Part shown: piece by piece, positions 33,801 to 60,100 of the stretch
Numbering within the stretch: the first letter of the stretch is position 1
Layout: each line of letters opens with the position of its first letter
Source: Anaeramoeba ignava BMAN
Taxonomy: Eukaryota; Protista; Anaeramoebae
Assembly: GCA_028826165.1 (NCBI GenBank)
Contig: JAPDFW010000083.1
Coordinates: 62,001-126,000, forward strand
DNA length: 64,000 nucleotides
Direction: 5' to 3'
Notes under the pieces: generated by a model
The model's input: only the letters and a program-made list of their open reading frames with translations
Told to the model about the DNA's origin: nothing
The model's database searches: none
Translations under genes and position numbers: made by a program

Positions 33801-35069
33801 ATATTTTATGTTTTTTATTTATATTTTATATTTTATATTTATTTTATATTTATATTTATATTTTATATTTATATTTTATTTTTATATTTATATTTATATT
33901 TTTATATTTATATTTATATTTATATTTATATTTTATATTTATATTTTATATTTTATTTATATTTTATATATATATATTTATGTTTATATTTATATTTATA
34001 TTTTATATTTATATTTATATTTATATTTATATTTTATATTTTATATTTATATTTTATTTATATTTATTTTATTTTTATTTTTATATTTATATTTATGTTT
34101 TTATATTTATATTTTATATTTATATTTTATGTTTATGTTTATTTTATATTTATTATTTATATTTATATTTTATATTTATATTTATATTTATATTTATGTT
34201 TTTATTTTATTTTATATTTATATTTTATATTTTATATTTTATATTTTATATATTTTATATTTATATTTTATATTTATATTTTATATTTATATTTTATATT
34301 TATATTTTATATTTATAATTATATTTATATTTATATTTATATTTATATTTTTATTTTTATATTTATATTTATGTTTATTTTATATTTTATATTTATATTT
34401 TATATTTATATATATTTTATATTTATATTTATATTTACATTTATATTTATATTTATATTTATATTTATGTTTTATATTTATATTTATATTTTATATTTTT
34501 ATATTTTATTTATATTTATATTTATATTTATATTTATATTTATATTTATATTTATTTATATTTTATATTTATATTTATAGTATTTATATTTTATATTTAT
34601 ATTTATATTTATATTTATATTTATATTTATATTTATATTTATTTTATATTTATATTTATATTTATATTTATATTTATATTTATGTTTATACTTATATTTA
34701 TATTTATATTTATATTTATATTTATATTTATATTTATATTTATATTTATATTTATATTTATATTTATATTTATATTTATATTTATATTTATATTTATATT
34801 TATATTTATATTTATATTTATATTTATATTTATATTTATATTTATATTTATATTTTAAATATTTATATTTATATTATATCGTTAATTGTTAAACGTATAC
34901 ATAAAGATGTGTATTTCTCAATATCAAAATTATGTGATTGAATTTGCTTTTTGAATTTGGTTTGCGTTAAAGAATTAAATAATTGAATCCAAAATGGATC
35001 ATCAAATGGTATCTCTTTTGTTCCTGAAAAATCTAATAATAAAGATTCAAGTTGTTCAAATGATTCCAT
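27850..35069 (-). CDS. DYM: Dymeclin (Golgi organisation) with acidic tandem-repeat C-terminal tail
   Basis: Exons approx. 35069-34901, 31759-31420, 31351-31113, 30729-30459, 30386-30305, 30216-end. Motifs [70 protein letters not shown] and LHPY. The stop is at 28089 as written, but the tail repeats resume and stop cleanly at about 27850. Confidence 0.9.
27855..28860 (-). repeat. Coding minisatellite, unit about [23 protein letters not shown] (about 60-78 bp), more than 10 copies
   Basis: Visible in the ORF translation and the DNA. Confidence 0.9.
31790..34870. repeat. About 3.1-kb (TATATT)n intronic microsatellite, perfect at both ends and degenerate in the middle
   Basis: Fills dymeclin intron 1 (31760-34900). 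Confidence 0.95.
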
Positions 35070-35374: not shown

Positions 35375-36133
35375 TCAATTTCGTTTGAAAACAAGTGCTC
35401 CTCTTTTATAAGATGTTTTGTTAGTTAATTTGAAAGAACGAGAAAGAAATTTAGAAACACCACGTCTTGCATTAAAAGATTTTTGTTGAAGACTTTTAAT
35501 TACTCTTTGATTTTTATCAGATCTTGCAGAAGCTTTTGCCATTAAAAAAAACAATTCATTATGAATAATAACTTTTTTTGGGATCTTTTTCTTGGTTTGG
35601 AAACGGGAATATGTATTAGGGCCCCAACCTCGAATGTATTCACTGAATAATTCTGCTAGTTTATCAAGTTTCTTGCCTATTCCTGGTCGCGGACGTTGAG
35701 AAAAGAATTGGTTCAATTTTTGCTCTTTTTCGGGATCTAAATTACCGTTTATAAAATATCTTCCAGTTCCTTTTTTAGGATGAGTTTCAATAATTTCGTG
35801 AGTGCTGTCTTCATTTATTATTGAAAGATTTTTTGGATTTTCAAGTGTTAATTTTTCATTTTCAGTTGTTTTTGAATCTTCTTCTGTTTTTTCCAGTTTG
35901 GAATTCGAGAAAGGAAAAGAAATTGCTTTTTCTTGTTCTTTTGGTTCTTGTTGTCTTATCAAATTTGTTAATTTTTCTTCTTGTTCAATAAAAGCAAAAT
36001 TTTTTGGAGTTGGAAAATTAAGTGTGTTTGTAAACTGAAAAGAATCCGGATCATCATATAAAATAGAGAAATCATTCTCATTCAAAAGCTGATCTGGAAA
36101 AAGTGTGTTTGTTGAAAATATATCAAAAGACAT
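35375..36133 (-). CDS. Hypothetical protein, 252 aa, intronless; acidic/aromatic N-terminus and basic C-terminal domain
   Basis: ORF with coding-like composition from ATG 36133 (MSFDIFSTNTLFPDQ); the upstream ORF extension is low-complexity UTR. No family recognised. Confidence 0.7.
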   Translation of the reverse strand: MSFDIFSTNTLFPDQLLNENDFSILYDDPDSFQFTNTLNFPTPKNFAFIEQEEKLTNLIRQQEPKEQEKAISFPFSNSKLEKTEEDSKTTENEKLTLENPKNLSIINEDSTHEIIETHPKKGTGRYFINGNLDPEKEQKLNQFFSQRPRPGIGKKLDKLAELFSEYIRGWGPNTYSRFQTKKKIPKKVIIHNELFFLMAKASARSDKNQRVIKSLQQKSFNARRGVSKFLSRSFKLTNKTSYKRGALVFKRN

Positions 36134-36615
36134 ATGAAGAAAGTAAGAAAAAGAAAAGAAAAGAAAAGAAAAAATGAAAATTAAAGAGAAATAGCAATAA
36201 ATTATTAATTGAAAAATTGTGAAATAAAGATTTAATGATGAGTGTTGCTGAGTTGGTTCAGTAAATGGGTTCTTAAAACAAAAAAACAAAAAAAAAAAAA
36301 TTTTTTTCTTTTAATTAAAATTAATTAAAAAGAAATTAATTAAAATTAAATAATTAAAATTAATTATTTAAATAAAAGGAAACAGTTTTGAACAGCCAAT
36401 TCTTATTCTTATTCTTTTTAAAAATTAAAAATTTAAAAATTAAAAAATTTTTCTTTTTTTTTTTGAAATGAAAAGAGGATTTGATTCTCTTAATTTCTTT
36501 TTGAAGAAATTGAATTGAATTGAAAAAGAAAAATTTGAAAAAAAAAGATTTGAAAAAAAAGATTTGAATTGAATTGAATTGAATTAAAATTGAATTGAAT
36601 TGAATTTGAATGAGT

Positions 36616-39536: not shown

Positions 39537-41319
39537 TTAATTTTGATTTTTAAATTTCTTAATTAATAAATCAAATAAATTTGGGTTTGTTTGATTTAAT
39601 TGAAAATAATCAATTCCAATTTGAATTTCTTCAATTATTTCTTGTGTAATTTGAATATCTTCTTTAATTTGATTTGAATAAATCCAATATTCAAATATTT
39701 GAAATGATTTATCACTTAATTCACTATAATCTGTAACTTTATTAGAAGTATCATTTGTTACAGATAAAAACATTCCTCGATATAATTCACTTCTCATTAT
39801 TAATATTAATTTAGGGAATTTATATTGTTTTTCTTTTCTTTCAATTATAAAATCCTTTTCATTTTCATTTTCATTCAAATAAATTCTTTTCATTGTTTCT
39901 TCTATTTTTTCATTTGAATTTATAATTTCTTTAATTTCAGAATATAATACTGGATTTATATTAGAATTGTTTGAATAAATCATTTCAAATATTTGATTGG
40001 ATTCTTTAATTGATTTATTTGAAATAATTTCTTGAAGTTTTTCAATTTCATTTTCATTTTGATTTTGATTTAATCTATATTTTAATATTAATTTATGAGC
40101 TTCAATTATTTCTCCATTTTCGGTTTTAAATGAAATATCACAAAATTCTTTTCTTTCAAATAATTTTATCAAATCTTCTTCAAGATTGGAAAAAGGAGGA
40201 GGTAAATAATAAAAAAATGAAGTATAAGAACCACAAAAAATATGATAATTAGAAATATTTTCATTAAATCTTAATTCAGGAAGTTCAATTTGAATGGGAA
40301 TTGATTGATTTCCTGGATCTTCAGTTCCTAATTGACCATAATAATTATTTCCAAATACTATCATCTTATTATTGGAAGTTAGAATCAAATTATGGAAATT
40401 TCCAACAGAAAAATCAACAATATTATCATTTTCATTTTCAAATAAAGATGATTTGATTTCAGTAAATTCATAAGTATTTTCATTTTTACCAAATCCATTA
40501 TATTCAGAATAGCCACATGAATAAAGTTTTCTTTTTGGATTTTGATTTTGATTTTCGATTTTCAATCAACATTATTGAATGATAATTTCCACATTTAATA
40601 TCAATTATTTTACCTTTTGGAATATTTTGGATTTTGGTTAATTTATCGATTTGTTTTTCTTCTTTTCTTGATTCTCCTAATCCAAGTTGACCGTATCCAT
40701 TATCACCGCATACAAATAATTCTTGATTTGAATTTAAAAGGAAAACATGAAATGAAGAATTTCCTGAAAATATTTTAGAAACATTTTTCATTATCAAAAT
40801 TGGTTTTTCTGCCCATTTAAGTGTTTCATAATCATAACCAAGTTGACCATAATCATTTGAACCAAATCCATAAGCATTTTGATTTGAAGTTAATAAGTAA
40901 ATTGAACTAGAACCAGAAACAATATCTTGGATTGTTCTATCATTTTTATCTTCAATTAATGATGAAATATTGATAAATTCTTTTGGATTTTTTGGATTAA
41001 TATCATATCCTTTTGCAAATACATTTCCTTCTATTGTTAAAATAGCTTCATTTCGAAAACTAACAGTTACTTTTTGAATATTTTCAATTTGGATTTTTTC
41101 AGGATTTTGTTTTGAATATTTTTTATTTAAATATTCTATTGATTTTCCATTTTCAAAAAGGAAAATTGTTCCGAAATAACCTGATGAAATTTGTTTAATT
41201 TGTTTTTCATTTTTATTTTCATTTTCAAATTTAAATTGAATTGGTTTTGTTATTTTAATTGGTTCATTTTTGAAAAGAATTGGAAATTGATTTCTTCCAA
41301 AAAATAAACAATCATTCAT
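39537..41319 (-). CDS. RCC1-repeat beta-propeller + tandem BTB/POZ protein, copy A (inverted; +1 frameshift at about 40557)
   Basis: ORFs 41319-40504 and 40565-39537 join into one paralogue. RCC1 motifs GSNDYGQLG and CGDNGYGQLGLG; BTB motifs FCDISF..EAHKLILKYR and KLILIMRSELYRGMF. Confidence 0.85.
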
Positions 41320-41387
41320 TTTTAAAAAGAAAAAATGAAAAAAATGATTTTCTAATTTTTCATTTTTTTTTTAAGTTTTATTTAAAA

Positions 41388-42773
41388 ATGATTTCCCAAA
41401 ATTCACTTTCTTTTAATCAAAAATTATTCACATTTAATACAATGATGCTAATAAGTATTTTTTTTATGTGCATTATTTCACAGTTTACATATTCTGTTTC
41501 ACAAAACAAAAAAGAGAAATCCACACTTGAAGATATAGAAAAAAACGCAAAAAATCAAAATAGAAACATAAAAGAAAATCAAAATATAAACATAAAAGAA
41601 AATCAAAATACAAACATAAAAGAAAATCAAAATATAAATATAAAAGAAAATCAAAATATAAATATAAAAGAAAATCAAAATATAAACATAAAAGAATTAA
41701 ATGAAAATTGGTTTGAAAATTATCTCGATTTTTACAATAAAACACTTGATGAAATAACAACATTTTCAAAGAAAAATGCGAAATTTGTTGTGTTTAGAGC
41801 TGTTGATGGTTTGGGAAATAGATTAATGGGTTTGGTCGCAAGCTTTTTATTCTCCATTTTAACAGATCGTATTTTTATTATTGATTGGCCGTATCAAGAT
41901 GGCCATATCACTCAAGTTTACGACTTAATGAAGCAACCACTTTTTAATTGGGATTTTGACAGTGTTGCGAATTTTTACGATGAAAAAGAAATTTATCAAA
42001 CAGCTGCATACTTCGATTTTGCGGATCATGAAGATATGTCGCTTTTTCTGTGCGAGGATTTCCAGACTAAACTTGATAAATATCAGTTCATTTTCATGAG
42101 AACAAACAACTATTTTTCGCCTGCAATGATGAACAACAAGTTTTTTATTAAGAAATTAGAATCAAAATTTACTCAGAAACAAATACACTCAATGTTTTCA
42201 ACTCTTGGAAATAAAATCATTATTCCCATTGATTCTATTCAGGCAAAAGTGGATGATTTTGTGGAAAAAAATCATTTCCATTCACCGGGAAAATATCCAA
42301 TAGGAATTCATTTAAGAAATCTTTATATACATTCATCGTTAAATAACTCATGGATTTGGAGTTGTGCTAATTCAATTCTGGAAAATAAAATCCAAGAAAA
42401 CCCCGAAATGCAAAATTTGGAACCAATTTGGTTCATAAGTACCGATAATATAAAAGACAAAAAAGAAGCAAAGGCAAATTATCCTGATCGTTTCCTGTCA
42501 AGAGACATTATTCTTGATAGAAATTCAATTGAAGGAAATCAAGAATCATTTGTGGATATGCTTCTTCTTTCACATTGCAATGATATTCTTACTTTATATG
42601 CAAGATCATCATTTACTTATGTTTCTCATGGTCTTGCTGATATTAATCCTTATGTCAAGAAATGCAATCATCTTCCTTCTTCAGAACCTTGTTTTCATGG
42701 ATTTAGGCAATTAAGCAAAACTCAATGTTTCGAATCAACCATTATTAATAATCTCAGAACAGAATGCTCTTGA
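41388..42773 (+). CDS. Type II membrane fucosyltransferase, GT37 (xyloglucan FUT1)-like / O-FucT clan
   Basis: Intronless. N-terminal TM (MMLISIFFMCIISQF) and a stem of NIKENQNI repeats. Motifs GLGNRLMGLVASFLFSILTDRIFIIDW, IGIHLR, FISTD, VDMLLLSHCND..SSFTYVSHGL and SEPCFH parallel the GT37 motifs GLGNR, IGIQVR, EMYLLS, STFGYVAQGL and MEPCFH. Confidence 0.8.
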   Translation: MISQNSLSFNQKLFTFNTMMLISIFFMCIISQFTYSVSQNKKEKSTLEDIEKNAKNQNRNIKENQNINIKENQNTNIKENQNINIKENQNINIKENQNINIKELNENWFENYLDFYNKTLDEITTFSKKNAKFVVFRAVDGLGNRLMGLVASFLFSILTDRIFIIDWPYQDGHITQVYDLMKQPLFNWDFDSVANFYDEKEIYQTAAYFDFADHEDMSLFLCEDFQTKLDKYQFIFMRTNNYFSPAMMNNKFFIKKLESKFTQKQIHSMFSTLGNKIIIPIDSIQAKVDDFVEKNHFHSPGKYPIGIHLRNLYIHSSLNNSWIWSCANSILENKIQENPEMQNLEPIWFISTDNIKDKKEAKANYPDRFLSRDIILDRNSIEGNQESFVDMLLLSHCNDILTLYARSSFTYVSHGLADINPYVKKCNHLPSSEPCFHGFRQLSKTQCFESTIINNLRTECS

Positions 42774-42837
42774 TTTTTTAAAATCCAAAACAATATTTTT
42801 TTTTTCATTTTTTTCTTTTCAAAAAAAATAAAAGAAA

Positions 42838-44655
42838 ATGAATCAAAATCAAAATCAAAATCAAAATCAAAATCAAGAAAATGATTGTTTATTTTTTGGT
42901 TTAAATCGAAAACCAAAACTTATCAAAAATAAATCAAACGAAATAACAAAACCAATTCAATTTAAATTTAAAAATGAAAATGAAAATGAAAATGAAAAAC
43001 AAATTAAACAAATTTCATCAGGTGATTTTTCAACAATTTTCCTTTTTAAAAATGGAAAAGCAATAGAATATTTAAAAGACAAATGGTTAAAACAAAATCC
43101 TCAAAAAATCCAAATTGAAAATATTCAAAAAGTAACTGTTGGTCTTCATAATGAAGCTATTTTAACAATAGAAGGAAATGTATTTGCAAAAGGAAAAGAT
43201 ATTAATAGAAGAAATCAATACAAATTTGCTAATATTTCATCATTAATTGAAGATTCAAATGATAGAATAATTCAAGATATTGTTTCTGGATTAAGTTCAA
43301 TTTACTTATTAACCTCAAATCAAAATGCTTATGGAATTGGTTCTAATAAATTTGGTCAACTTGGTTATGACTATAAAACACTTAAAAAAACAGAAAAACC
43401 AATTTTAATGATGAAAAATGTTTCTAAAATATTTTCAGGAATTTCTTGTTTTCATGCTTTTCTTTTGAATTCAAATCAAGAATTATTTGGATGCGGATAT
43501 AATAAATATCACCAAATCGGGTTAACAGAATCAATAAAAGAAATGAAACTCACACAATTAACCAAAATCCAAAATATTCCAAAAGGCAAAATAATTGATA
43601 TTCAATCTGGGTTTTCTTTTTCAATAACGTTGATTGAAAATGAAGATGAAAATCCAAAAAGAAAACTTTATTCATGTGGCTATTGGGAATATAATGGACT
43701 TGGCAAAAATCAAGATACTTATGAATTTACTGAAATCAAATCATCTTTATTTGAAAATGAAAATGATAATATCCTTGAAATTTCTGTTGGAAATAACCAT
43801 CTTTTGATTTTAACAACAAAAGGGAAATTGATAGGATTTGGAGATAATACCTTTGGTCAGTTAACTTTCGAAAACCTTGATGATTACCAGAGTCAGATCG
43901 TACAAATTGAACTTCCTAAATTAAGATTTAATGAAGATATTTCCAATTATCATATTTCTTGTGGAGAATTCAGATCATTTCTTTATTATTCTCCTTTTTC
44001 TTCTTTTTCCAATCTTGAAGAAGATTTAATAAAACTATTTAGAAGAAAAGAATTTTGCAATATTTCATTTAAAACCGAAAATGGAGAAATAATTGAAGCT
44101 CATAAATTAATATTAAAATATAGATTAAATGAAAATCAAATTGAAAAACTTAAAGAAATTATTTCAAATAAATCAATTAAAGAATCAAATCAAATATTTG
44201 AAATGATTTATTCAAACAATTCCAAAATAAATCCAATATTATATTCTGAAATTAAAGAAATTATAAATTCAAATGAAAAAATAGAAGAAACAATGAAAAG
44301 AATTTATTTGAATGAAAATGAAAATGAAAATGAAAAAGATTTTATTATTGAAAGAAAAGAAAAACAATATAAATTTCCAAAATTAATATTAATAATGAGA
44401 AGTGAATTATATCGAGGAATGTTTTTATCTGTAACTGAAGATACTTCCAATAAAGTTACAGATTATAGTGAATTAAGTAATAAATCATTTCAAATATTTG
44501 AATATTGGATTTATTCAAATCAAATTAAAGAAGATATTCAAATTACACAAGAAATTATTAAAGAACTTAAAACAGGAATTGATTATTTTCAATTAAATCA
44601 AACAAATCCAAATTTATTTGATTTATTAATTAAGAAATTTAAAAATCAAAATTAA
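42838..44655 (+). CDS. RCC1 + tandem BTB protein, copy B
   Basis: Intact 605-aa ORF, paralogous to copies A and C-F. Confidence 0.92.
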   Translation: MNQNQNQNQNQNQENDCLFFGLNRKPKLIKNKSNEITKPIQFKFKNENENENEKQIKQISSGDFSTIFLFKNGKAIEYLKDKWLKQNPQKIQIENIQKVTVGLHNEAILTIEGNVFAKGKDINRRNQYKFANISSLIEDSNDRIIQDIVSGLSSIYLLTSNQNAYGIGSNKFGQLGYDYKTLKKTEKPILMMKNVSKIFSGISCFHAFLLNSNQELFGCGYNKYHQIGLTESIKEMKLTQLTKIQNIPKGKIIDIQSGFSFSITLIENEDENPKRKLYSCGYWEYNGLGKNQDTYEFTEIKSSLFENENDNILEISVGNNHLLILTTKGKLIGFGDNTFGQLTFENLDDYQSQIVQIELPKLRFNEDISNYHISCGEFRSFLYYSPFSSFSNLEEDLIKLFRRKEFCNISFKTENGEIIEAHKLILKYRLNENQIEKLKEIISNKSIKESNQIFEMIYSNNSKINPILYSEIKEIINSNEKIEETMKRIYLNENENENEKDFIIERKEKQYKFPKLILIMRSELYRGMFLSVTEDTSNKVTDYSELSNKSFQIFEYWIYSNQIKEDIQITQEIIKELKTGIDYFQLNQTNPNLFDLLIKKFKNQN

Positions 44656-44710
44656 AATTAAAATTCCAAAAAAATTTTTTTTCATTTTTTCATTTTTTTT
44701 CTTTTCAAAA

Positions 44711-46496
44711 ATGAATGATTGTTTATTTTTTGGTTTCAATAAATATCCAAAACTTTTCAAAAATGAACCAGAAAAAATAACAAAACCAATTCAATTTAAA
44801 TTTAAAAATGAAAACGAAAATGAAAATGAAAATGAAAATGAAAAACAAATTAAACAAATTTCATCAGGAAATTTCTCAACAATTTTCCTTTTTGAAAATG
44901 GAAAAGCAATAGAATATTTAAATGAAAATGATTCAAATCAAAATCCTTCAAAAATTCAAATTGAAGAAAATATTCAAAAAGTAACTGTTGGTGAGCAAAA
45001 TGAAGCTATTTTAACAATAGAAGGAAATGTATTTGCAAAAGGAATTAATCCAAAAAATCCAAAAGAATTTATCAATATTTCATCATTAATTGAAGACACA
45101 AATGATAGAATAATTCAAGATGTAGTTTCTGGATACAGTTCAATTTACTTATTAACCTCAAATCAAAATGCTTATGGAATTGGTTCAAATCAAGATGGTG
45201 AACTTGGTTTTGATTCTGAAACACTTTATAAAACAGAAAAACCAATTTTAATGATGAAAAATGTTTCTAAAATATTTTCAGGAAATGATTCAAATCGTGT
45301 TTTTCTTTTAAATTCAAATCAAGAATTATTTGTATGTGGTGATAATGGATACGGTCAACTTGGATTAGGAGAATCAAGAACAGAAGAAACAAAAACCCAA
45401 AAATTAACCAAAATCCAAAATATTCCAAAAGGTAAAATAATTGATATTCAATGTGGAGGGATTCATTCAATAATGTTGATTGAAAATGAAGATCACAAAT
45501 GAAAATCCAAAAAGAAAACTTTATTCATGTGGATTTTATTTATATAATGGACTTGGGAAAAAATATCAAAATACTTATGAATTTACTGAAATCAAATCAT
45601 CTTTATTTGAAAATGATAATATTCTTAAAATCTCTGTTGGAAATTTCCATAATTTGATTCTAACTTCCAATAATAAGATGATAGGATTTGGTGCTAATTT
45701 TTCTGGTCAATTAGGAACTGGAGATACAAAATATCAATTAATTCCAATTCAAATTGAACTTCCTAAATTAAGATTTAATGAAAATATTTCTAATTATCAT
45801 GTTTCTTGTGGCTCTGCTAAATCATTTCTTTATTATTCTCCTCCTTTTTCCAATATTGAAGAAGATTTGATAAAATTATTTGAAAGAAAAGAATTTTGTA
45901 ATATTTCATTTAAAACCGAAAATGGAGAAATAATTGAAGCTCATAAATTAATATTGAAATATAGATTAAATCAAAATGAAGATCAAATTGAAAAACTTCA
46001 AGAAATTATTTCAAAAAAATCAATTAAAGAATCAAATCAAATATTTGAAATGATTTATTCAAACAATTCTAAAATAAATCCAGTATTATATTCTGAAATT
46101 AAAGAAATTATAAATTCAAATGAAAAAATAGAAGAAACAATGAAAAGAATTTATTTGAATGAAAATGAAAATGAAAATGAAAAAGATTTTATTATTGAAA
46201 GAAAAGAAAAACAATATAAATTTCCTAAATTAATATTAATAATGAGAAGTGAATTATATCGAGGAATGTTTTTATCTGTAACTGAAGATAAATCTAATAA
46301 AGTTACAGATTATAGTGAATTAAGTAATAAATCATTTCAAATATTTGAATATTGGATTTATTCAAATCAAATTAAAGAAGATATTCAAATTACACAAGAA
46401 ATTATTAATGAAATTAAAACAAGAATTGATTATTTTCAATTAAATCAAACAAATCCAAATTTATTAGATTTATTAATTAAGAAATTTAAAAATTAA
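44711..46496 (+). CDS. RCC1 + tandem BTB protein, copy C (+1 frameshift at about 45496)
   Basis: ORFs 44711-45502 and 45480-46496 join into one full-length paralogue. Confidence 0.85.
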
Positions 46497-46749
46497 AATT
46501 AAAATTAAAATTAAAATTAAAATTAAAATTAAAAATTAAAATTAAAATTAAAATTAAAATCAAAATTAAAATTAAAATTAAAATTAAAATTAATATTAAA
46601 ATTAAAATTAAAATCAAAATTAAAATCATAATTTAAAATTAAAATCAAAAATTAAAATTAAAATTAAAATTAAAATTAAAATTAAAATTAAAATTAAAAT
46701 TAAAATTAAAATTCCAAAAATCATTTTTTTCATTTTTTTCTTTTCTAAA

Positions 46750-48528
46750 ATGAATGATTGTTTATTTTTTGGTTTAAATCTATATCCAACTCTTTTCAAA
46801 AATAAACCAAATAAAATAATAAAACCAATTCAATTTAAATTTGAAAATGAAAATGAAAATGAAAATGAAAATGAAAAACAAATTAAACAAATTTCATCAA
46901 GTTATTTCTCAACAATTTTCCTTTTTAAAAATGGAAAAGCAATAGAATATTTAAATGAAAATGATTCAAATCAAAATATTCAAAAAATCCAAATCGAAAA
47001 TATTCAAAAAGTAATTGTTGGTTCTGATAATGAAGCTATTTTAACAAAAGAAGGAAATGTATTTGCAAAAGGAAGCGATATTGATTTAGAAAATCCAAAA
47101 GAATTTATCAATATTTCATCATTAATTGAAGACACAAATGATAGAATAATTGAAGATATCGCTTGCTGTGCTAGCTCAATTTACTTATTAACTTCAAATC
47201 AAAATGTTTATGGATTTGGTGACAACTTTTATGGCCAATTTGGTTTTGATTCGTCAAATATCTCACAAAAACCAATTTTAATAATGAAAAATGTTTCTAA
47301 AATATTTTCAGGAAATACTTCTTATCATGTTTTTCTTTTAAATTCAAATCAAGAATTATTCGGATCAGGATATAATGGATACGGTCAACTTGGATTAGGA
47401 GATTCAATAAATGAATACATCAAAAAAATAACCAAAATACAAAATATTCCAAAAGGCAAAATAATTGATATTCAATCTGGATATTCTCATTCAATAATGT
47501 TGATTGAAAATGAAAATCAAAAACCAAAAAGAAAACTTTATTCATGTGGAGATTATCGAAATAATGGACTTGGCAAAAAAAATCAAAATACTTATGAATT
47601 TACTGAAATCAAATCATCTTTATTTGAAAATGATAATAATATTCTTGATTTTTCTGTTGGAAATGCTCATAATTTGATTTTAACATCAAAAGGGAAATTT
47701 ATTGGATTTGGAGAAAATTCTTATATTCAATTAGGAAACGGAAATAAAAAAATCAAATTAATTCCAATTCAAATTAAACTTCCTAAATTAATATTTAATG
47801 AAAATATTTCTAATTATCATATTTCTTGTGGAGTTGATAAAACATTTCTTTATTATTCTTCTTTTTTTTCCAATCTTGAAGAAGATTTGATAAAATTATT
47901 TAGAAGAAAAGAATTTTGCAATATTTCATTTAAAACAGAAAATGGAGAAATAATTGAAGCTCATAAATTAATATTGAAATATAGATTAAAAGATGAAAAT
48001 GAAATTGAAAATGAAATTGAAAATGAAATTGAAAAACTTCAAGAAATTATTTCAAAAAAATCAATTAAAGAATCAAACCAAATATTTGAAATGATTTATT
48101 CAAACAAAATAATAAATCCAAAATTATATTCTGAAATTAAAGAAATTATAAATTCAAATGAAAAAATTGAAGAAACAATGAAAAGAATTTATTTAAATGA
48201 AAATGAAAAAGATTTTATTATTGAAAGAAAAGAAAAACAATATAAATTTCCTAAATTAATATTAATAATGAGAAGTGAATTATATCGAGGAATGTTTTTA
48301 TCTGTAACAAATGATACTTCTAATAAAGTTACAGATTATAGTGAATTAAGTAATAAATCATTTCAAATATTTGAATATTGGATTTATTCAAATCAAATTA
48401 AAGATGATATTCAAATTACACAAGAAATTATTAATGAAATTAAAACAAGAATTGATTATTTTCAATTAAATCAAACAAATCCAAATTTATTTGATTTATT
48501 AATTAATAAATTTAATAATCAAAATTAA
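46750..48528 (+). CDS. RCC1 + tandem BTB protein, copy D
   Basis: Intact 592-aa ORF. Confidence 0.92.
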   Translation: MNDCLFFGLNLYPTLFKNKPNKIIKPIQFKFENENENENENEKQIKQISSSYFSTIFLFKNGKAIEYLNENDSNQNIQKIQIENIQKVIVGSDNEAILTKEGNVFAKGSDIDLENPKEFINISSLIEDTNDRIIEDIACCASSIYLLTSNQNVYGFGDNFYGQFGFDSSNISQKPILIMKNVSKIFSGNTSYHVFLLNSNQELFGSGYNGYGQLGLGDSINEYIKKITKIQNIPKGKIIDIQSGYSHSIMLIENENQKPKRKLYSCGDYRNNGLGKKNQNTYEFTEIKSSLFENDNNILDFSVGNAHNLILTSKGKFIGFGENSYIQLGNGNKKIKLIPIQIKLPKLIFNENISNYHISCGVDKTFLYYSSFFSNLEEDLIKLFRRKEFCNISFKTENGEIIEAHKLILKYRLKDENEIENEIENEIEKLQEIISKKSIKESNQIFEMIYSNKIINPKLYSEIKEIINSNEKIEETMKRIYLNENEKDFIIERKEKQYKFPKLILIMRSELYRGMFLSVTNDTSNKVTDYSELSNKSFQIFEYWIYSNQIKDDIQITQEIINEIKTRIDYFQLNQTNPNLFDLLINKFNNQN

Positions 48529-48927
48529 AATTAAAATTAAAATTAAAATTAAAATCAAAATAAAAATTAAATTAAAATTAAAATTAAATTCAAATTAAAA
48601 TTAAAATTAAAATTAAAATCAAAATCAAAAATAAAATTTAAAAATCAAAATTAAAATTAAAATTAAAATTAAAATTATAATTTAAAATTTAAAATTAAAA
48701 TCAAAATTAAAATTAAAATTAAATATAAAATTAAAATTCATTTTAAAATTAAAATTAAAATCAAAATTAAAATTCAAAATTAAAATTAAAATTAAAATTA
48801 AAATTAAAACTAAAATTAAAATTAAAATTAAAATTAAAATTAAAATTAAAATTAAAATTAAAATTAAAATTAAAATTAAAATTAAAATTAAAATCAAAAT
48901 CATTTTTCATTTTTTTCTTTTTCAAAA

Positions 48928-50712
48928 ATGAATGAAATTTTATTTTTTGGTTCAAATGAATATCCAAAACTTTACGAAAATAAACCAAATAAAATAATAA
49001 AACCAATTCAATTTAAATTTGAAAATGAAAATGAAAATGAAAATGAAAATGAAAATGAAAATGAAAATGAAAAACAAATTAAACAAATTTCATCAGGAAA
49101 TTATTCAACAATTTTCCTTTTTGAAAATGGAAAAGCAATAGAATATTTACGATTTTGGAATGAAGAAATTCAAATTGAAAATATTCAAAAAGTAACTGTT
49201 GGTGAGCAAAATGAAGCTATTTTAACAAAAGAAGGAAATGTATTTGCCAAAGGAAAAGATATTAATCCAGAAAATCCAAAAGAATTTATCAATATTTCAT
49301 CATTAATTGAAGATACAAATGATAGAATAATTGAAGATGTTGTTTCTGGATCTAGCTCAATTTACTTATTAACTTCAAATCAAAATGCTTATGGAATTGG
49401 TTCAAATTATTCTGGTCAACTTGGTTTAAAATATCAAACACTTAAAAAAACAGAAAAACCAATTTTAATGATGAAAAATGTTTCTAAAATATTTTCAGGA
49501 AATTCTTCAGGTTCTGTTTTTCTTTTAAATTCAAATCAAGAATTATTTGGATGCGGATGGAATTATTATGGTCAACTTGGATTAGGAAAATTTGTGGCTC
49601 AAAGAATCAGACAATTAACCCAAATCCAAAATATTCCAAAAGGCAAAATAATTGATATTCAATCTGGAGATTCTCATTCAATAATGATGATTGAAGAAGA
49701 AGATGGATATCGACAGCTTTACTCATGTGGAGATTCTCTATATAATGGACTTGGCAAAAAATCAAACCAAAGATTATTTACTCAAATTAAATCATCTTTA
49801 ATTATAAATCAAAATCCTATTGATTTTTCTGTTGGAAATAAACATACTTTGATTTTAACTCCAAAAAGAAAATTAATTGGATTTGGAGATAATTATTATG
49901 GTCAATTAGGAAAAGAAACACGAGATAATCCAAAAGATCCAATTCAAATTAAACTTCCTAAATTAAGATTTAATGAAGATATTTCCAATTATCATATTTC
50001 TTGTGGAGTTGATAAAACATTTCTTTATTATTCTTCTCCTTCTTTTTCCAATCTTGAAGAAGATTTGATAAAATTATTTAGAAGAAAAGAATTTTGTGAT
50101 ATTTCATTTAAAACAGAAAATGGAGAAATAATCAAAGCTCATAAATTAATATTAAAATATAGATTAAATGAAAATCAAAATCAAATTGAAAAACTTCAAG
50201 AAATTATTTCAAAAAAATCAATTGAAGAATCAAATCAAATATTTGAAATGATTTATTCAAACAATTCCAAAATAAATCCAAAATTATATTTTGAAATTAA
50301 AGAAATTATAAATTCAAATGAAAAAATTGAAGAAACAATGAAAAGAATTTATTTAAATGAAAATGAAAATGAAAATGAAAAAGATTTTATTATTGAAAGA
50401 AAAGAAAAACAATATAAATTCCCAAAATTAATATTAATAATGAGAAGTGAATTATATCGAGGAATGTTTTTATCTGTAACTGAAGATAAATCTAATAAAG
50501 TTACAGATTATAGTGAATTAAGTAATAAATCATTTCAAATATTTGAATATTGGATTTATTCAAATCAAATCAAAGAAGATATTCAAATTACACAAGAAAT
50601 AATTAATGAAATTCAAATTGGAATTGATTATTTTCAATTAAATCAAACAAATCCAAATTTATTTGATTTATTAATTAACAAATTTAATAATCAAAATCAA
50701 AATCAAAATTAA
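48928..50712 (+). CDS. RCC1 + tandem BTB protein, copy E
   Basis: Intact 594-aa ORF. Confidence 0.92.
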   Translation: MNEILFFGSNEYPKLYENKPNKIIKPIQFKFENENENENENENENENEKQIKQISSGNYSTIFLFENGKAIEYLRFWNEEIQIENIQKVTVGEQNEAILTKEGNVFAKGKDINPENPKEFINISSLIEDTNDRIIEDVVSGSSSIYLLTSNQNAYGIGSNYSGQLGLKYQTLKKTEKPILMMKNVSKIFSGNSSGSVFLLNSNQELFGCGWNYYGQLGLGKFVAQRIRQLTQIQNIPKGKIIDIQSGDSHSIMMIEEEDGYRQLYSCGDSLYNGLGKKSNQRLFTQIKSSLIINQNPIDFSVGNKHTLILTPKRKLIGFGDNYYGQLGKETRDNPKDPIQIKLPKLRFNEDISNYHISCGVDKTFLYYSSPSFSNLEEDLIKLFRRKEFCDISFKTENGEIIKAHKLILKYRLNENQNQIEKLQEIISKKSIEESNQIFEMIYSNNSKINPKLYFEIKEIINSNEKIEETMKRIYLNENENENEKDFIIERKEKQYKFPKLILIMRSELYRGMFLSVTEDKSNKVTDYSELSNKSFQIFEYWIYSNQIKEDIQITQEIINEIQIGIDYFQLNQTNPNLFDLLINKFNNQNQNQN

Positions 50713-51068
50713 AATTAAAATCAAAATTAAAATCAAAATTAAAATTAAAATTAAAATTAAAATTAAAATTAAAATTAAAAATTAAAATTCAAAATTAAAA
50801 TCAAAATTAAAATCAAAATTAAAATCAAAAACAAAATTAAAATCAAAATTAAAATTAACAAAATTAAAATTAAAATTAAAATTAAAATTAAAATTAAAAT
50901 TAAAATTAAAATTAAAATTAAAATTAAAATTAAAATCAAAATCAAAATCAAAATTAAAATTAAAAAATGAAATTAAAATTAAAATTAAAATTAAAATTAA
51001 AATTAACAAAATTAAAATTAAAATTAAAATTCCAAAAATCATTTTTTTCATTTTTTTTCTTTTTAAAA

Positions 51069-52874
51069 ATGAATGATTGTTTATTTTTTGGTTTAAATCA
51101 ATTTCCAAAACTTTTTAAAAATGAAACAGAAAAAATAACAAAACCAATTCAATTTAAATTTGAAAATGAAAATGAAAATGAAAATGAAAATGAAAATGAA
51201 AATGAAAATGAAAAACAAATTAAACAAATTTCATCAGGAAATTTCTCAACAATTTTCCTTTTTAAAAATGGAAAAGCAATAGAATATTTAAATGAAAAAG
51301 ATCCAAATCAAAATCCTTCAGAAATCCAAATTGAAGAAAATATTGAAAAAGTAACTGTTGGTTTTTGGAATGAAGCTATTTTAACAATAGAAGGAAATGT
51401 ATTTGCCAAAGGAAAAGTTATTAATCCAAATAATCCAAATCAATTTATCAATATTTCATCATTAATTGAAGATACAAATGATAGAATTATTCAAGATATT
51501 GTTTCTGGATACAATTCAATTTACTTATTAACTTCAAATCAAAACGTTTATGGATTTGGTTCAAATGATTATGGTCAATTTGGTTTTTATTCTAAAACAC
51601 TTTATAAAACAGAAAAACCAATTTTAATGATGAAAAATGTTTCTAAAATATTTTCAGGAAATACTTCATTTCATGTTTTTCTTTTAAATTCAAATCAAGA
51701 ATTATCTGGATGTGGATATAATTATTATGGTCAAGTTGGATTAGGAGAATCAAGAAGAAAAGAAAAAAAAATCAAAAAATTAACCAAAATTCCAAATATT
51801 CCAAAAGGCAAAATAATTGATATTCAATGTGGGCACGCTTATTCAATAATGATGATTGAAAATGAAAATAAAAATCCAAAAAGAAAACTTTATTCAACTG
51901 GAGATTATGAATATAATGGACTTGGCAAAAATGGAGATGAAAATACTTATGAATTTACTGAAATCAAATCATCTTTATTTGAAAATGATAATATTCTTGA
52001 ATTTTCTGTTGGGAATGCTCATACTTTGATATTAACATCTCATAATAAGATGATAGTATTTGGAGATAATTTTTATGGTGAATTAGGAACTGGAAATACA
52101 AAAAATCAATTAATTCCAATTCAAATTGAACTTCCTAAATTAAGATTTAATGAAAATATTTCTAATTATCATATTTCTTGTGGAGTTGATAAAACATTTC
52201 TTTATTATTCTTCTCCTTCTTTTTCCAATCTTGAAGAAGATTTGATAAAATTATTTAGAAGAAAAGAATTTTGTGATATTTCATTTAAAACCAAAAATGG
52301 AGAAATAATTGAAGCTCATAAATTAATATTGAAATATAGATTAAATCAAAATCAAATTGAAAAACTTCAAGAAATTATTTCAAATAAATCAATTAAAGAA
52401 TCAAATCAAATATTTGAAATGATTTATTCAAACAGAATTATAAATCCAAAATTATATTTTGAAATTAAAGAAATTATAAATTCAAATGAAAAAATAGAAG
52501 AAACAATGAAAAGAATTTATTTAAATGAAAATGAAAATGAAAATGAAAAAGATTTTATTATTGAAAGAAAAGAAAAACAATATAAATTCCCAAAATTAAT
52601 ATTAATAATGAGAAGTGAATTATATCGAGGAATGTTTTTATCTGTAACTGAAGATAAATCTAATAAAGTTACAGATTATAGTGAATTAAGTAATGAATCA
52701 TTTCAAATATTTGAATATTGGATTTATTCAAATCAAATCAAAGAAGATATTCAAATTACACAAGAAATAATTAATGAAATTCAAATTGGAATTGATTATT
52801 TTCAATTAAATCAAACAAATCCAAATTTATTTGATTTATTAATTAAAAAATTTAATAATCAAAATCAAAATTAA
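51069..52874 (+). CDS. RCC1 + tandem BTB protein, copy F
   Basis: Intact ORF. The true start MNDCLFFG at 51069 is assigned by homology to the paralogues; the upstream extension is (TTAAAA)n. Confidence 0.92.
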   Translation: MNDCLFFGLNQFPKLFKNETEKITKPIQFKFENENENENENENENENEKQIKQISSGNFSTIFLFKNGKAIEYLNEKDPNQNPSEIQIEENIEKVTVGFWNEAILTIEGNVFAKGKVINPNNPNQFINISSLIEDTNDRIIQDIVSGYNSIYLLTSNQNVYGFGSNDYGQFGFYSKTLYKTEKPILMMKNVSKIFSGNTSFHVFLLNSNQELSGCGYNYYGQVGLGESRRKEKKIKKLTKIPNIPKGKIIDIQCGHAYSIMMIENENKNPKRKLYSTGDYEYNGLGKNGDENTYEFTEIKSSLFENDNILEFSVGNAHTLILTSHNKMIVFGDNFYGELGTGNTKNQLIPIQIELPKLRFNENISNYHISCGVDKTFLYYSSPSFSNLEEDLIKLFRRKEFCDISFKTKNGEIIEAHKLILKYRLNQNQIEKLQEIISNKSIKESNQIFEMIYSNRIINPKLYFEIKEIINSNEKIEETMKRIYLNENENENEKDFIIERKEKQYKFPKLILIMRSELYRGMFLSVTEDKSNKVTDYSELSNESFQIFEYWIYSNQIKEDIQITQEIINEIQIGIDYFQLNQTNPNLFDLLIKKFNNQNQN

Positions 52875-52970: not shown

Positions 52971-53570
52971 ATGTCTTTTGAAACATTATTCAATCTTCGA
53001 TTTACAGCTAAAAGATTACACAAAGATTCAATACGAGAAGAAAAGAAAAGCGAAAGAGAGAAAAAGAAAGTATTAGCAGCATTAAAAAGCGGGAATAAAG
53101 AAAAAGCCGAAATTCTAGCAGGAAACGCAATTCGAATGCACAAACAATCAATTCAATTACTTCATTTATCATCTAAAATCGATGCAATTCGTGAGAAAAT
53201 TGAGCAACAAAAAACAATGGGACAAATTAATAAAGTTCTTCAAAAATCAGCAATTGCAATGAATAAAGAACTTTCCAAAGAATTGAATCCTCAAAAACTC
53301 ATGCAACTTATGCAAAAATTTGGAGAGCAAGAAGAGGATTTAGAAGTTAAAAGTATGTTTATTGATGAAATGATTTCCCCAAATGCTCAACCTATTCTTG
53401 ATTCAGAAGTCCAAGACTTAATTGCTCAAGCTACTAATGAAACTTCTCAAAAATTACCTGAAGTTCCTAATCTTCCTGAATTTCCTTCTCTTGATGGTTT
53501 GCCTGAAATTGATGAAAAAGCTAAAAATACTGAGAAAAAACCTGTTCAAGAAGCTAATCAACTCAAATAA
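52971..53570 (+). CDS. CHMP1: ESCRT-III subunit CHMP1/Did2/Vps46-like (divergent)
   Basis: LFNLRFTAKRL, EKKKVLAALKSGNKEKAEILAGNAIR, LSSKIDAI and LMQKFGEQEEDLEV match the CHMP1 core. Confidence 0.85.
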   Translation: MSFETLFNLRFTAKRLHKDSIREEKKSEREKKKVLAALKSGNKEKAEILAGNAIRMHKQSIQLLHLSSKIDAIREKIEQQKTMGQINKVLQKSAIAMNKELSKELNPQKLMQLMQKFGEQEEDLEVKSMFIDEMISPNAQPILDSEVQDLIAQATNETSQKLPEVPNLPEFPSLDGLPEIDEKAKNTEKKPVQEANQLK

Positions 53571-54106: not shown

Positions 54107-57100
54107 ATGTCAATTTATTAAAATTTCTTTTAATTCTGTTTTGCAACAAAAGAATTTACAAAATTAAAGATTTTGTTTTAAAATCACATTAAATTTATTT
54201 TTGAAAATGAAACATTTCGAGCATTTCTTGAATTAAATTTATTTTGAAACGTGCCAGTTTAAATTTATTTTAATTTGAAGTTAATTTCCAAAAATTAAAT
54301 TTATTTTCAAGTAAATTTATTTTGAAAAAAATTTTTGATTATTTTTTAAATTTATTTTTGAAAACAATAGATATTTATTTTGGCCATTGATTTTTGAATT
54401 TTTCTTTTTGAATTTTGATTTTCAATTTTTTCAAATTTTCAAAAATCCTGAATTAAATTTTTGTTGTTTATAAATTTTCTTAAAAACTCCAATAACTGAG
54501 AAGGTAAAAATCTATTTTGAATTAAATTTATTTTTTAAATTTATTTTGAAATTAAATTTATTTTGAATTAAATTTATTTTTTGAATTTATTTTGAATTAA
54601 ATTTATTTTTTGATTTATTTTGAATTAAATTTATTTTGAAATTGAATTTAATTTGAATTAAATTTATTTTGAAATTAAATTTATTTTGAATTAAATTTAT
54701 TTTGAAATTAAATTTATTTTGAATTAAATTTATTTTGAATTAAATTTATTTTGAAATTTTTGAAATTAAATTTATTTTGAAATTGAATTTATTTTGATTT
54801 TGAAATTGAATTTATTTTGAATTAAATTTATTTTTGAAATTGATTTAAATTTATTTTGAATTAAATTTATTTTGAAATTGAATTAAATTTATTTTGATTT
54901 GAATTTATTTTTGATTTAAATTTTGATTTTAAATTTAATTTATTTTGAATTAAATTTATTTTTTGATTTAAATTTATTTTGAATTGAATTTATTTTGAAT
55001 TAAATTTATTTTGAAATTGAATTAAATTTATTTTGAAATTGAATTAAATTTATTTTGAAATTGAATTAAATTTATTTTGAATTGATTTAAATTTATTTTG
55101 AAATTAAATTAAATTTATTTTGAATTAAATTTGAAATTGAATTTATTTTGAAATTAATTTTGAATTTAATTTTGATTTTTATTTTGATTTTGATTTTGAT
55201 TTTGATTTTCCTTTTAAAAAGATCCAAATAAAAGTTCATTTGGAACGTGATTTTACAGGTGAAAAAAGTCAAGTTTTATTATCAGCTGGAAATGATATTA
55301 TAATTGAAGAAATTATTTGCAGAATTTCTTATAGAAGAAAAGTAGATCCAACTACCATTCAATTATTTATAAAATTTCAAGAAGAAGGTAAAAAATTTTT
55401 TTTCAACTTAAAATTTATCAATTCAATTAAATTCAATCCAAATTTTTTTTTTAAAAATAGGAAAAGAAAAGAAAATTCAGCTCCAAGATCAAGAGAAATT
55501 AGTAGATGTTCTGAAAAGAGATATTTCTCGATCCTCTTTTTATTTTTATGCAAAAGAAAAAAATCAAAACTTACTTATTGAAGAACAAGAAGTCAAACCC
55601 AAACATAAAAAAGATTCAAATTCAATTTCATCAAGTATTTCATCTTCTTCTCTAAATTCCTTTTATGAAGACATGGAAAACTCACAAGACGAAGATGAAG
55701 ATGAAAATGAAAAAAATCCGTTGGATTCGTTTCCAAGTGAAATCAATATTGATGAGTTAGACATTCCTTTACCGAATGAAATTCTTGAGCAAGATTGGAA
55801 TGAATCCAAATTTTTAAATAGCGCAAATATTCCAGATCCTGATTTTGTTATTGATAATGAAAAAATCGAACAAGATGCAAAAAAACTTGAAAATATTTAC
55901 ACAAAAAATTTGGAAAACGATCAAGAATTTCAAAATACAAATCAAAAACCCAAAATTTTACCAAAAAAACATTCAAAAGATGAAAAAAATCATAAGACGA
56001 GCGAGAATATTAATAAAGAACATCATCATAATCAAAACAAAATTGAATCACAGAAACAAAAATTCAACCGAATGGACAATAATTCGGAAAATTATCAACA
56101 AGAAAAATTCACTGATTTAAAAAGATTATCATTAGCAAATTTACCGAAAAATTTCTTCGAGATTTTAGTATCCAAAAACATATCAACAGACTCACAAAAC
56201 ATTTACACTGATAACATTATTGATGATTTCCTGGAAGTAAACTTCACATTTCTGAAGCTGAACAATTATATCAAACTAAAAGAGTATGAAAGTAACATCG
56301 AAGATTCGGATTCCGAAGCTGATGAACTATCAGATTTTGGTGATTTTGATGAATATTACAACGAGAGTTTGAACGGAGTCAACGATATACTTGAAAATAT
56401 CTTGATGCCTCATGACGATCCAAATCTGTCGCAAGAAATGGAGCTGAAAAATATGGAGGACACATCCGAAATTTATTCAATGAGCGAGAACGAAAGTGAA
56501 ATACATAAATCAAGCACAACAACCGAACAAACTCAAGTTTCTGAAGATGAATCACACAAGTTGGTCATGTCAGAAAAAACGGATACAGAAACACATGACC
56601 ATGATTTAAATGAAATCTCCGATCCAAATTGGAGCGACATTAGTTTTATTCATCATGAAGAAACAGAAATAATTATTCCAATTGAAAAAAACGAAATCAA
56701 AGAAGAACAACAACAGAAAATACCTCTTGTTCCAACTCCGCCCATAGAACCTCCTCCTCCATCGGATGACGAGGTCGAGGACGATACTCCAAAAGAAAGT
56801 CCGCAAATTATTTTCACTCAGAATCCCAATTCCTCAATTCCGCTCCGCAAATCATCTGGCGGACCCCAAATATCTTATGATTTCCCTCCAAAATTTGCTT
56901 TTAAAACTTCCCTTGTCGATTTTAATGAATTCAACAGAAATATTATGGATTTTATTGTTGAATTGAACACTAAATATCTTATTGAATCTGGTTATTTTCT
57001 TGAAACTAATGGCCAACTTGCTAAAATTCAAAAAAATATGGCCATTTTAGAAACAATTAAATCAGAAATGGAATATATTGGCTCGAATTTTAAGAACCAT

Positions 57101-60100
57101 TTAGCCAATTTAACTCGAGTTTGTGAAAATGAAATTTATCTTTTTCTTGATTTCGCAATTCCTTTTATTTGCAAAGTATATATATATATATATTTGATCT
57201 TTTCCAAAAAAAAAAAAAAGAAACGAATTGATTATTTATTATTAATTATTATTATTTATTATTTATTATTTATTATTTATTATTTATTATTTATTATTGA
57301 TTATTAATTATTTATTATTTATTATTTATTATTTATTATTTATTATTTATTATTGATTATTTATTATTGATTATTAATTATTTATTATTTATTATTTATT
57401 ATTAATTATTAATTATTAATTAATTATTATATATTATTTATTATTTATTATTATTTATTATTTATTATTATTTATTATTTATTTATTATTTATTATTTAT
57501 TATTTATTATTATTTATTATTATTTATTTATTATTTATTATTTATTATTATTTATTATTTATTATTATTTATTATTTATTTATTATTTATTATTTATTAT
57601 TTATTATTATTTATTATTTATTTTTATTATTTATTATTAATTATTTATTATTAATTATTTATTATTATTTATTATTTATTATTAATTATTTATTATTTAT
57701 TATTTATTATTTATTATTATTTATTATTTATTTTTTGAAATATTTTTCAATAGCAAAATAATATTAAACAAGATTTTAAAGGAAAAGATACAAAAACACT
57801 ATTAGAAATGATCCAAAAAAACCAAATTAAGTTAACAAATGATAAGAAAGAGGAAATTATTTCATTATTAAAAAATCTAATATCTTTATCAGAATTTGTT
57901 TCTTCAGCCAATAGCGTAATCAAAGAAAAGAAAAGAAAAGAAAATTATAATATTCTTAGAATATTTATTTTGGTTGTTTTGATTATTATTAGGGAGTAAT
58001 TGAATTAATTAAACAAGATTTAGGAGTTTATTATTTTGATACTAATAATGAATTAGAAATGGCAAGTGGAAAAGTGAGCGAATCAACATTAGGAGGTAAA
58101 ATTTTTTTTTTACAATCGAATATTTTTTTGTAAATTTTTAAAATCAACTCCATTTAGTTCAATTTAATCTTCGACCTGTTAATGTTGGATCACTTGAAGT
58201 TAAAATTCACTCAAAAAGATTGCCAGCGTATCTTGCATTAACTGCATCTTTTTTGCATATCTTTTTATTAGATAAACATAAACCAAATAATATCACTGAA
58301 AAGCTTCGAACAGGAATTCCTGATCAAAGTTTCCCAATTAACATGATTAGAGTTCATAAACATCTTGAAATTCAAGGAAAGGAAAATTTCTTTTCTTCGA
58401 AATTAACTTGTGGAGATGATGAGATTGAAATTATAAGCAATGATGAATTAGTTATTGAGAATTGGAGTCGGATGCTTACAATCATGCATTCCAGATTAGA
58501 AGCTCATCAAATGATTCGGTAAATTAAAAATATTAATAAAATATTTAATAAAATATTTAAATATTTAAAATATAAATAAAATATTAATAAAATATTAATA
58601 AAATATTAATAAAATATAAAATATTAATAAAATATTAATAAAATATAAAAAATATTCATAAAATATTAATAAAATATTCATAAAATATTAAAAATATAAA
58701 AAATATAAATAAAATATTAATAAAATATAAAAATATTAATAAAATATAAAAATATTAATAAAATATTAATAAAATATTAATAAAATATTAATAAAATATT
58801 AATAAAATATTAATAAAATATTAATAAAATATTAATAAAATATTAATAAAATATTTATAAAATATTTATAAAATATTAATAAAATATTAATAAAATATTT
58901 ATAAAATATTAAAAATATAAAAATATTAATATAAATAGTGTCAATCCTGTTTCCTCAAAATATAAATATTCATACACAGTTATCATCCATGAATATGTTG
59001 AAGATGATGGTTCTTTCTCTTTTGATGTTCGCTCATTTAGTTCAATGTGGTCCATTTCCAAAACATTTTTAGAATTTATTGATTTACTTGAAAATTTAAA
59101 GCAAAAATTTAGCACACACATTTTTCCTAAAATGTCGAAAATATTCGACAAATTAATTAAACTCACGCGAACAAAATCAGTTCAGAATGAAGTTATCCAA
59201 GATAATATAAAGCTATTCACTGTTGCACTCTATTATACAGAAGCAACACTTCGCGAATTACTTGGAAATCCCGAAGTTGCACATTGCTCAGAAGTTATTC
59301 ATTTTTTCCAGATTGATAATATTTTCCATCCAATTGCAATGCAAGATGTTGAATATATCAAGTTTCTTTGTGTTGAAGAGCCAAAATCATTGAATTCATT
59401 CACCGATAATGGCGATTCACTACTTCATTATCTTCTTCTCAATTACGATAATTCTGATGTTATTCAAATGGTTTTGAAATCAAATCCTGATCTTTTTAAA
59501 ATTCCAAATGGAGAAGAAATCACACCAATTTTACTTGCAGTTAAACTAGGACAAATTGAGATTTTGAAAATATTTTCTCAAATTGAACAAGTTGATCTTA
59601 ATTTTGTTCATGAAAACTTTCGCGGAATAACTCCGTTTTTATTTTCAATTGAAAACCGCAATTTAAAAGTTGCTGAATTTCTTATTTCGCAAAAATGTGA
59701 TTTGAATGCACAAGAAACTCAATCAAAAAAATCTGCACTTCATTATGCAGTTGAATTTCAAGATTTGGAAATTGTTTTATTTTTGTTGAATAATTCGATT
59801 AATCTTGAATTGAGAAATTCTGATAATTTCACATCTTTACATCTTGCAATTCAGAAAGGATGTAAAGATATTGTTGATAACCTTTTAAAATTTGGAGCTG
59901 ATCCAAATGCACAAACATTAAATGGATTAAATTGGTAAAAATATTTAGCAAATTCAATTAAAATCAAAATTCATTTTCAATTTAAATTTAAAATCAAAAT
60001 TCATTTCAAAATTAAAATCAAAATCAAAATTCATTTCAAATTTAAAATTAAAATCAAAATTAAAATTCATTTTCAATTTAAAATCAAAATTAAAATCAAA

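Follow-up and report, generated by a model that had tools for sequence, protein, structure and literature searches.

In the F-box and MATH-BTB adaptor families of nematodes and plants, the cullin-binding domains are said to stay constant while the substrate-binding domains are positively selected. Variable repertoires of intracellular receptors are documented in animals and plants. The subject here is a gene family with a related layout in the unicellular metamonad Anaeramoeba ignava BMAN. A typical copy encodes an RCC1 propeller followed by two BTB domains, and six copies, A to F, lie at 39537-52874 of the 64,000-nucleotide stretch of contig JAPDFW010000083.1 that was analyzed (the window, to which all coordinates refer). 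The proteins join a near-constant end, which would serve as a ubiquitin-ligase-type adaptor, to one varied face, a layout shared with animal and plant immune receptors.

How does this family compare with the closest systems described? The nematode and plant expansions likewise run to hundreds of cullin adaptors in clusters, turn over quickly by birth and death, and have been assigned a speculative role in innate immunity (Thomas 2006, as cited in PMC12951971), but they form old diverged clades, whereas A. ignava is unicellular, uses an RCC1 propeller as the sensor, and carries one young subfamily of about 1,200 copies at about 91% nucleotide identity and in linkage equilibrium. Zebrafish NLR-B30.2 proteins (PMC4852459) and finTRIMs are also large intracellular families in which conversion and positive selection act on exposed hypervariable patches. 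The NLR-B30.2 family is built from other domains, however, and its roughly 400 genes lie mostly on one chromosome arm, while the A. ignava genes, about 1,200 and single exon, are dispersed genome-wide and have a BTB effector. Human RCBTB1, RCBTB2, and IBTK (PMC4447969), the nearest named Atlas clusters, share the order of propeller and tandem BTB. Their genes are conserved, occur in single copy, and act on host substrates, and the A. ignava cullin motif is atypical. Parachlamydiaceae, too, have massively expanded their ubiquitination adaptors (BTB and F-box proteins) in the arena where amoebae and bacteria meet, but these are bacterial effectors, and the A. ignava family is on the host side (PMC4209131). 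Finally, diversity-generating retroelements (DGRs) vary ligand-binding residues on a fixed scaffold through Asn/Tyr/Asp/Ser-type codons; unlike them, A. ignava varies at A and T, in all three codon positions, and over about 1,200 genes. The A. ignava family differs from the nematode and zebrafish repertoires in the domain pair, the scale, the single young and well-mixed pool, and the host, a unicellular metamonad. The literature covered, with subscription journals outside that coverage, yielded no description of this family and no repertoire of such scale in a free-living protist; RCC1 and BTB go unmentioned in the main texts of the genome paper (PMC11550330) and the intein paper (PMC10710043), whose supplements list only PANTHER counts.

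The size of the family was estimated from motif counts. A BTB2 22-mer has 1,246 matches in the genome and a propeller 22-mer has 1,069, with none for the reversed controls, giving about 1,200 copies, of which the window cluster holds only six. At 1.8 kb per copy, these occupy roughly 5% of a genome of 42,843,398 bp in 147 contigs (PMC11550330 Table S1). The copies are single-exon genes in clusters of about 1 to 6 on most contigs. Older A. ignava paralogues (27 to 42% identity) also exist, some of them present in the transcriptome, and a related fusion is found in A. flamelloides. A search with an A. flamelloides RCC1-BTB fragment returned no young family, though this search was word limited and does not imply absence; among the viral and metagenome contigs searched, no relatives were found. 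Over 100 annotated members (P0273-P0392) are propeller-only or truncated, at 300 to 525 amino acids, and may be frameshift errors, pseudogenes, or BTB-less variants. P0115, a 728-amino-acid member whose annotation includes an extra Rho-type GTPase domain, is a candidate fusion or gene-model artifact. Annotations of the BTK-binding/RCC1/claret type rank among the commonest in the lateral-transfer supplement of the genome paper (PMC11550330 Supplementary Data 4 and 5C).

Where do the copies differ? In the main alignment of 57 full-length paralogous coding sequences, 32 motif-loop codons share only 26% amino acid identity, compared with 83% for the remaining propeller and 94% for the BTB tail. 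Variation is thus unevenly spread over the propeller; an even spread would have spoken against the original prediction, which was made from the window alone. The same pattern recurs in a replication set of 61 neighbor copies not picked by score, and copies A to F themselves give 33, 79, and 94%. The 32 positions were picked with the entropy profile already known; the face test described below, based on predicted secondary structure, is less circular. The eight loop lists of the original prediction match the sequence copy by copy, and its near-identical tails hold at 94%, but the propeller scaffold (79 to 83%) is much less constant than those tails. The original prediction also overlooked loops that are equally variable (residues 9-12, 58-59, 116-117, 148-149, and 316-317 in the numbering of copy F) and equally variable rim positions (233-236 and 345-348), as well as the scale of the family and the pool of gene conversion in which it evolves. 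Its description of the changes as rich in Y, W, F, S, D, and N is borne out: these six residues make up 69% of loop residues versus 31% of other propeller residues. Loops contain 24% Tyr, 14% Ser, 10% Phe, 9% Asn, 9% Asp, 2% Trp, and 1% Ile, while base composition would predict about 8% Tyr and 15% Ile.

Which surface of the propeller varies? A four-stranded blade carries its a-b turn and its c-d loop on a common face. Copy F is the reference for residue numbering and for an AlphaFold2 (AF2) model with a predicted local distance difference test (pLDDT) score of 87.9, whose strand pattern gives seven four-stranded blades and then two BTB domains. Its seven-bladed propeller spans residues 1-380 (51069-52208, plus strand), in agreement with Pfam RCC1/RCC1_2 matches, which are above cut-off in the window copies. 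Foldseek with this model returns RPGR, RCC1, and the RLD2 of HERC2, with template modeling (TM) scores, normalized to the target, of 0.75 to 0.81. The hypervariable a-b turns and c-d loops of copy F are at residues 9-12, 58-59, 99-100, 116-117, 148-149, 165-168, 199-201, 217-220, 256-257, 279-282, 316-317, 333-336, and 373-375 in the C half. Sites were assigned to faces from blade topology and AF2 secondary structure, not from model coordinates, and were counted as selected at a posterior above 0.95 under the site model M2a. Of 44 such sites, 35 are in loops of one face, 7 at adjacent strand ends, and 2 in the tail. Among loop sites, this is 35/111 on the variable face versus 0/68 on the opposite one (Fisher P = 6e-9), and all 42 fast-evolving propeller sites share one face, as had been predicted. 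The BTB tail exits from the other. In a profile alignment, F217, F256, F279, F316, and F333 fall on UVR8 W198, W233, W250, W285, and W302 (UVR8 numbering inferred from motifs), residues that line the UVR8 dimer interface (PMC7455749). On this alignment, the variable face is the predicted counterpart of the UVR8 dimer-interface face.

The family tree is star-like, with a mean pairwise nucleotide identity of 90.9% and no pair above 94.3%. Does this reflect a single burst of amplification? Of 80 four-fold sites, 48 are invariant and 11 have 8 or more variants, while a star burst would lead one to expect 4.7 and 0.7; the spectrum fits a coalescent, not a burst. Linkage is all but absent. Between framework variants that are common, r2 drops to about 0.02 (1/56), the level of independence, beyond about 10 nucleotides, and four-gamete violations reach 95% in the 57 copies; the decay was replicated in the 61 neighbor copies. 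Window copies are no nearer one another than they are to those on other contigs. This rules out a cluster formed by recent tandem duplication in place: B, D, E, and F are 87 to 90% identical to one another and no closer than to copies elsewhere. Because linkage is lost within about 10 nucleotides and neighbors are not closest relatives, family-wide gene conversion is the best inference for the mosaic, and neutral simulations in which short tracts convert at random within a pool of a few hundred copies reproduce the linkage decay, although all simulations here were small and noisy. As an example of concerted evolution, over about 1,200 dispersed loci, the family is unusually clean.

A conversion pool gives each site its own genealogy, which makes tree-based tests such as those of PAML and MEME unreliable. 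Tree-based site models (M1a/M2a and a FUBAR-like model) were therefore run but not trusted alone, and since the linkage decay shows per-site genealogies, a site-independent Dirichlet-multinomial model was added for its tolerance of recombination. On the tree, M2a gives twice the log-likelihood difference (2dL) as 1590, with a nonsynonymous rate ratio (omega2) of 5.0 relative to the background silent rate. The recombination-tolerant mixture agrees (2dL = 387; loop omega, 7 to 8.6; omega2 = 8.6) and places no selected site in the BTB. Nonsynonymous diversity at the loops is 5 to 8 times the background silent diversity. Opposite-face loops have an omega of 0.24 to 0.31, and the BTB tail, at 0.1 to 0.35, is under purifying selection. 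NG86 counting (Nei-Gojobori) on the four intact window copies only gives a loop pN/pS of 0.94, which is uninformative through saturation.

What might the constant end do? PF00651 matches above cut-off in two stretches in most copies, joined to the propeller, and the best PDB sequence match of the BTB is KBTBD4. In copy F, BTB1 (52227-52478, plus strand) is degenerate, lacking the alpha3/beta4 segment in which the CUL3 motif lies. BTB2, together with one further helix, occupies 52539-52868 (plus strand). The CUL3 motif is phi-x-E in the alpha3/beta4 loop (PMC3616122), and its equivalent in BTB2 is T-E-D at 52647-52655. RCC1-BTB proteins such as IBTK act as substrate receptors of cullin-3-RING ligases (CRL3) (PMC4447969) and the A. 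ignava genome has about eight cullin genes, so by analogy the family would be one of cullin-3 adaptors. A. flamelloides has over 33 cullins versus these 8 (PMC11550330 Supplementary Data 4 and 5C). Some members carry an additional signal. In 17 of 113, among them P0006, P0009, and P0012, a lysine-rich tail extends past the usual stop and ends in a CaaX box (CLIF, CSIF, or CFIF), and membrane targeting is therefore predicted for these; the tail is absent from all window copies.

The explanation to which we give a little better than an even chance is that the family is a germline repertoire of about 1,200 intracellular RCC1-BTB-BTB adaptors, mixed by conversion, with a selected binding face, a cullin-3 output, and non-self targets. 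A constant BTB-BTB module is combined with 14 loops on one propeller face whose variation is rich in Tyr, Ser, Phe, Asn, and Asp. Frequent short-tract conversion would homogenize the scaffold and recombine loop variants, and diversifying selection would maintain the variability of the binding face. From what is known of related families, BTB2 might dock on a cullin-3-type ligase, so that a protein bound by the propeller would be ubiquitinated, at membranes in the case of the CaaX-ending subset (about 15%). The least certain step concerns the targets, which may be non-self proteins that evolve fast, for example those of giant viruses or the effectors of bacterial symbionts, prey, or pathogens. 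The genus has inteins linked to nucleocytoplasmic large DNA viruses (NCLDV) and, in A. pumila, a Legionellales symbiont (PMC10710043; 10.64898/2026.04.11.717937). Together with the symbiosome, these make bacterial or viral proteins plausible targets, with self-recognition or the control of selfish elements as alternatives.

Several observations weigh against this repertoire, and they are best taken with the rival accounts. Part of the compositional bias has a simple source, aromatics at some loop positions being a general trait of RCC1 repeats (UVR8). A first rival is targeted local hypermutation: an error-prone or templated process would raise the mutation rate of the loop codons, its products would be spread by conversion, and selection would filter only the types of residue. 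At loop codons and their immediate neighbor, silent diversity is 0.19 to 0.22 versus 0.04 to 0.10, an increase of about 3 to 4 times that is gone 2 to 3 codons away (four-fold sites). When the mutation parameter theta is freed at the 32 loop codons, it settles at 4.6 times background and omega drops to 1.3 (not significant), a better fit than one that combines background theta and high omega (2dL = 16). The dN/dS test proposed with the original prediction therefore has a divided outcome, omega being 5 to 9 against the background silent rate but indistinguishable from neutrality against a loop-specific one. Allele frequencies at the loops are no more even than neutral ones (Ewens-Watterson), and the roughly 13 codon alleles per loop site, many of them singletons, are nearer to simulated hypermutation (k of 10 to 11) than to frequency-dependent selection (k of 5.5 to 8). 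Against hypermutation, Asn and Gly codons between variable codons are invariant at positions 1 and 2, and their silent diversity, like that of adjacent four-fold sites, is 0.19 while loop position 1-2 diversity is 0.5; simulated patch hypermutation predicts similar values, with adjacent silent diversity at about 0.44, the loop level. In simulation, frequency-dependent selection keeps conversion away from the loops and also brings a modest rise in the silent diversity next to them. A DGR mechanism specifically is ruled out, as A and T positions vary alike rather than adenine specifically. Among the window open reading frames (ORFs) scanned, there is no template repeat and no reverse transcriptase, no genome-wide search for the latter having been made. 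On balance, selection is favored over a locally raised mutation rate, and hypermutation is rather unlikely. Distinctly doubtful is the bolder idea of a dedicated diversification system, in which codon-focused hypermutation of the 14 loops plus family-wide conversion would produce an anticipatory set of about 1,200 antibody-like intracellular receptors coupled to ubiquitination.

What if the repertoire is real but its output or targets are different? It might serve self or kin discrimination, suppress selfish elements (inteins, homing nucleases, or toxin-antidotes), or provide cullin-independent BTB scaffolding at symbiosome or phagosome membranes. This is improbable, yet the most substantial of the alternatives. 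The cullin link has its difficulties: in an ungapped alignment, T-[E/N]-D lies opposite KBTBD4 L-K-E, with the Asp invariant in 57/57, an atypical phi-x-E, although V-T-E one residue upstream fits the motif in 39/57. The 3-box/BACK hairpin is at most partial, with only one helix (587-600) after BTB2 in the model, and any CUL3 among the A. ignava cullins is putative. The CaaX subset, the 45 to 103 inteins per Anaeramoeba genome (PMC10710043), and the ties of nematode adaptor expansions to hybrid incompatibility (PMC12951971) also fit other outputs or targets. On the other side stand the CRL3 role of IBTK and the near invariance of tail residues around the cullin-binding segment in the 57 copies. 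Another rival, a multicopy family that is selfish or neutral, spread by amplification between microsatellites, and unconstrained in its surface loops, would account for the microsatellite spacers and for the many frameshifted or truncated copies (frameshifts in about 18 of some 60 partial neighbor copies). As for expression, the top 240 matches to the young subfamily include no transcriptome-derived entry, and none of the public runs matching window copies is recorded as RNA. But relaxed loops should sit near the silent background of 0.07 to 0.1, not at 0.5, and with the opposite-face loops conserved and the tail purified, relaxed constraint is ruled out and a neutral family is very improbable. 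Hardly credible is a false mosaic created by Pilon short-read polishing that shuffled variants among paralogues. The Nanopore assembly did pass through ABruijn, Racon, Nanopolish, and Pilon, single-base insertions are frequent, and even a single-copy fucosyltransferase gene shows three read differences. Polishing is an unlikely cause, however, because public-run contigs of 64 to 130 nucleotides, at single-copy depth, span variable loops of copies B and C without a mismatch, and linkage is lost equally fast in the uniquely mappable propeller and in the tail.

Why would such a repertoire matter? About 5% of the genome is invested in one family by a host that farms bacterial symbionts, and with this family cell-autonomous recognition could be tested one copy at a time in a deep-branching eukaryote. 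It is also of interest as a binding scaffold, being a natural library of Tyr-rich binders that vary on one face and are joined to a likely E3 adaptor.

As for the locus itself, the original prediction of six intronless paralogues of about 600 amino acids in tandem is right in number but needs amendment in layout. Copies B (42838-44655, 605 amino acids), D (46750-48528, 592), E (48928-50712, 594), and F (51069-52874, 601 from the family start codon at 51069) are intact and, like C (44711-46496), on the plus strand. Copy A (39537-41319, minus strand), also with the seven-bladed propeller and two BTB domains, is inverted, and between it and B is an ORF outside the family, a GT37/NodZ-like fucosyltransferase (41280-42773, plus strand; Pfam XG_FTase, E = 2e-22). 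Copies A and C are split ORFs in the assembly, each through an extra C (at 40557 and at 45496 in the blade-5 linker) in the same hexamer-microsatellite linker. Once it is removed, the two read through for 594 and 595 codons without meeting a stop, and introns at these breaks are ruled out, since one base restores the family frame. At 45496, contigs of two public runs lack the extra C and none carries it. Given a Pilon-polished Nanopore assembly and the frameshifts among neighbor copies, assembly error is likely, with real pseudogenes possible.

The spacer at 46497-46749 consists of an AT-only hexamer microsatellite and then a T/C-rich leader just upstream of the ATG. Similar spacers are at 48529-48927 and 50713-51068, with a shorter one at 44656-44710, and the leader also precedes other genes in the window, not the family alone. 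In the fucosyltransferase ORF, reads give a repeat (41567-41664) that is 96 nucleotides shorter, with three substitutions relative to the assembly. About 3 kb at 32000-35000 is nearly GC-free simple repeat, a source of spurious long ORFs, and two other ORFs, of 544 amino acids (55673-57307, plus strand) and 304 amino acids (35375-36289, minus strand), have no Pfam match. Immediately 3' of copy F is a Snf7/Did2-like ESCRT-III gene (52971-53570, plus strand) with a similar T/C-rich leader upstream, and at 16535-22123 (minus strand) a TOR kinase ORF (FAT, FRB, PI3K, and FATC domains) stands out at about 44% GC in a genome of about 20% around it.

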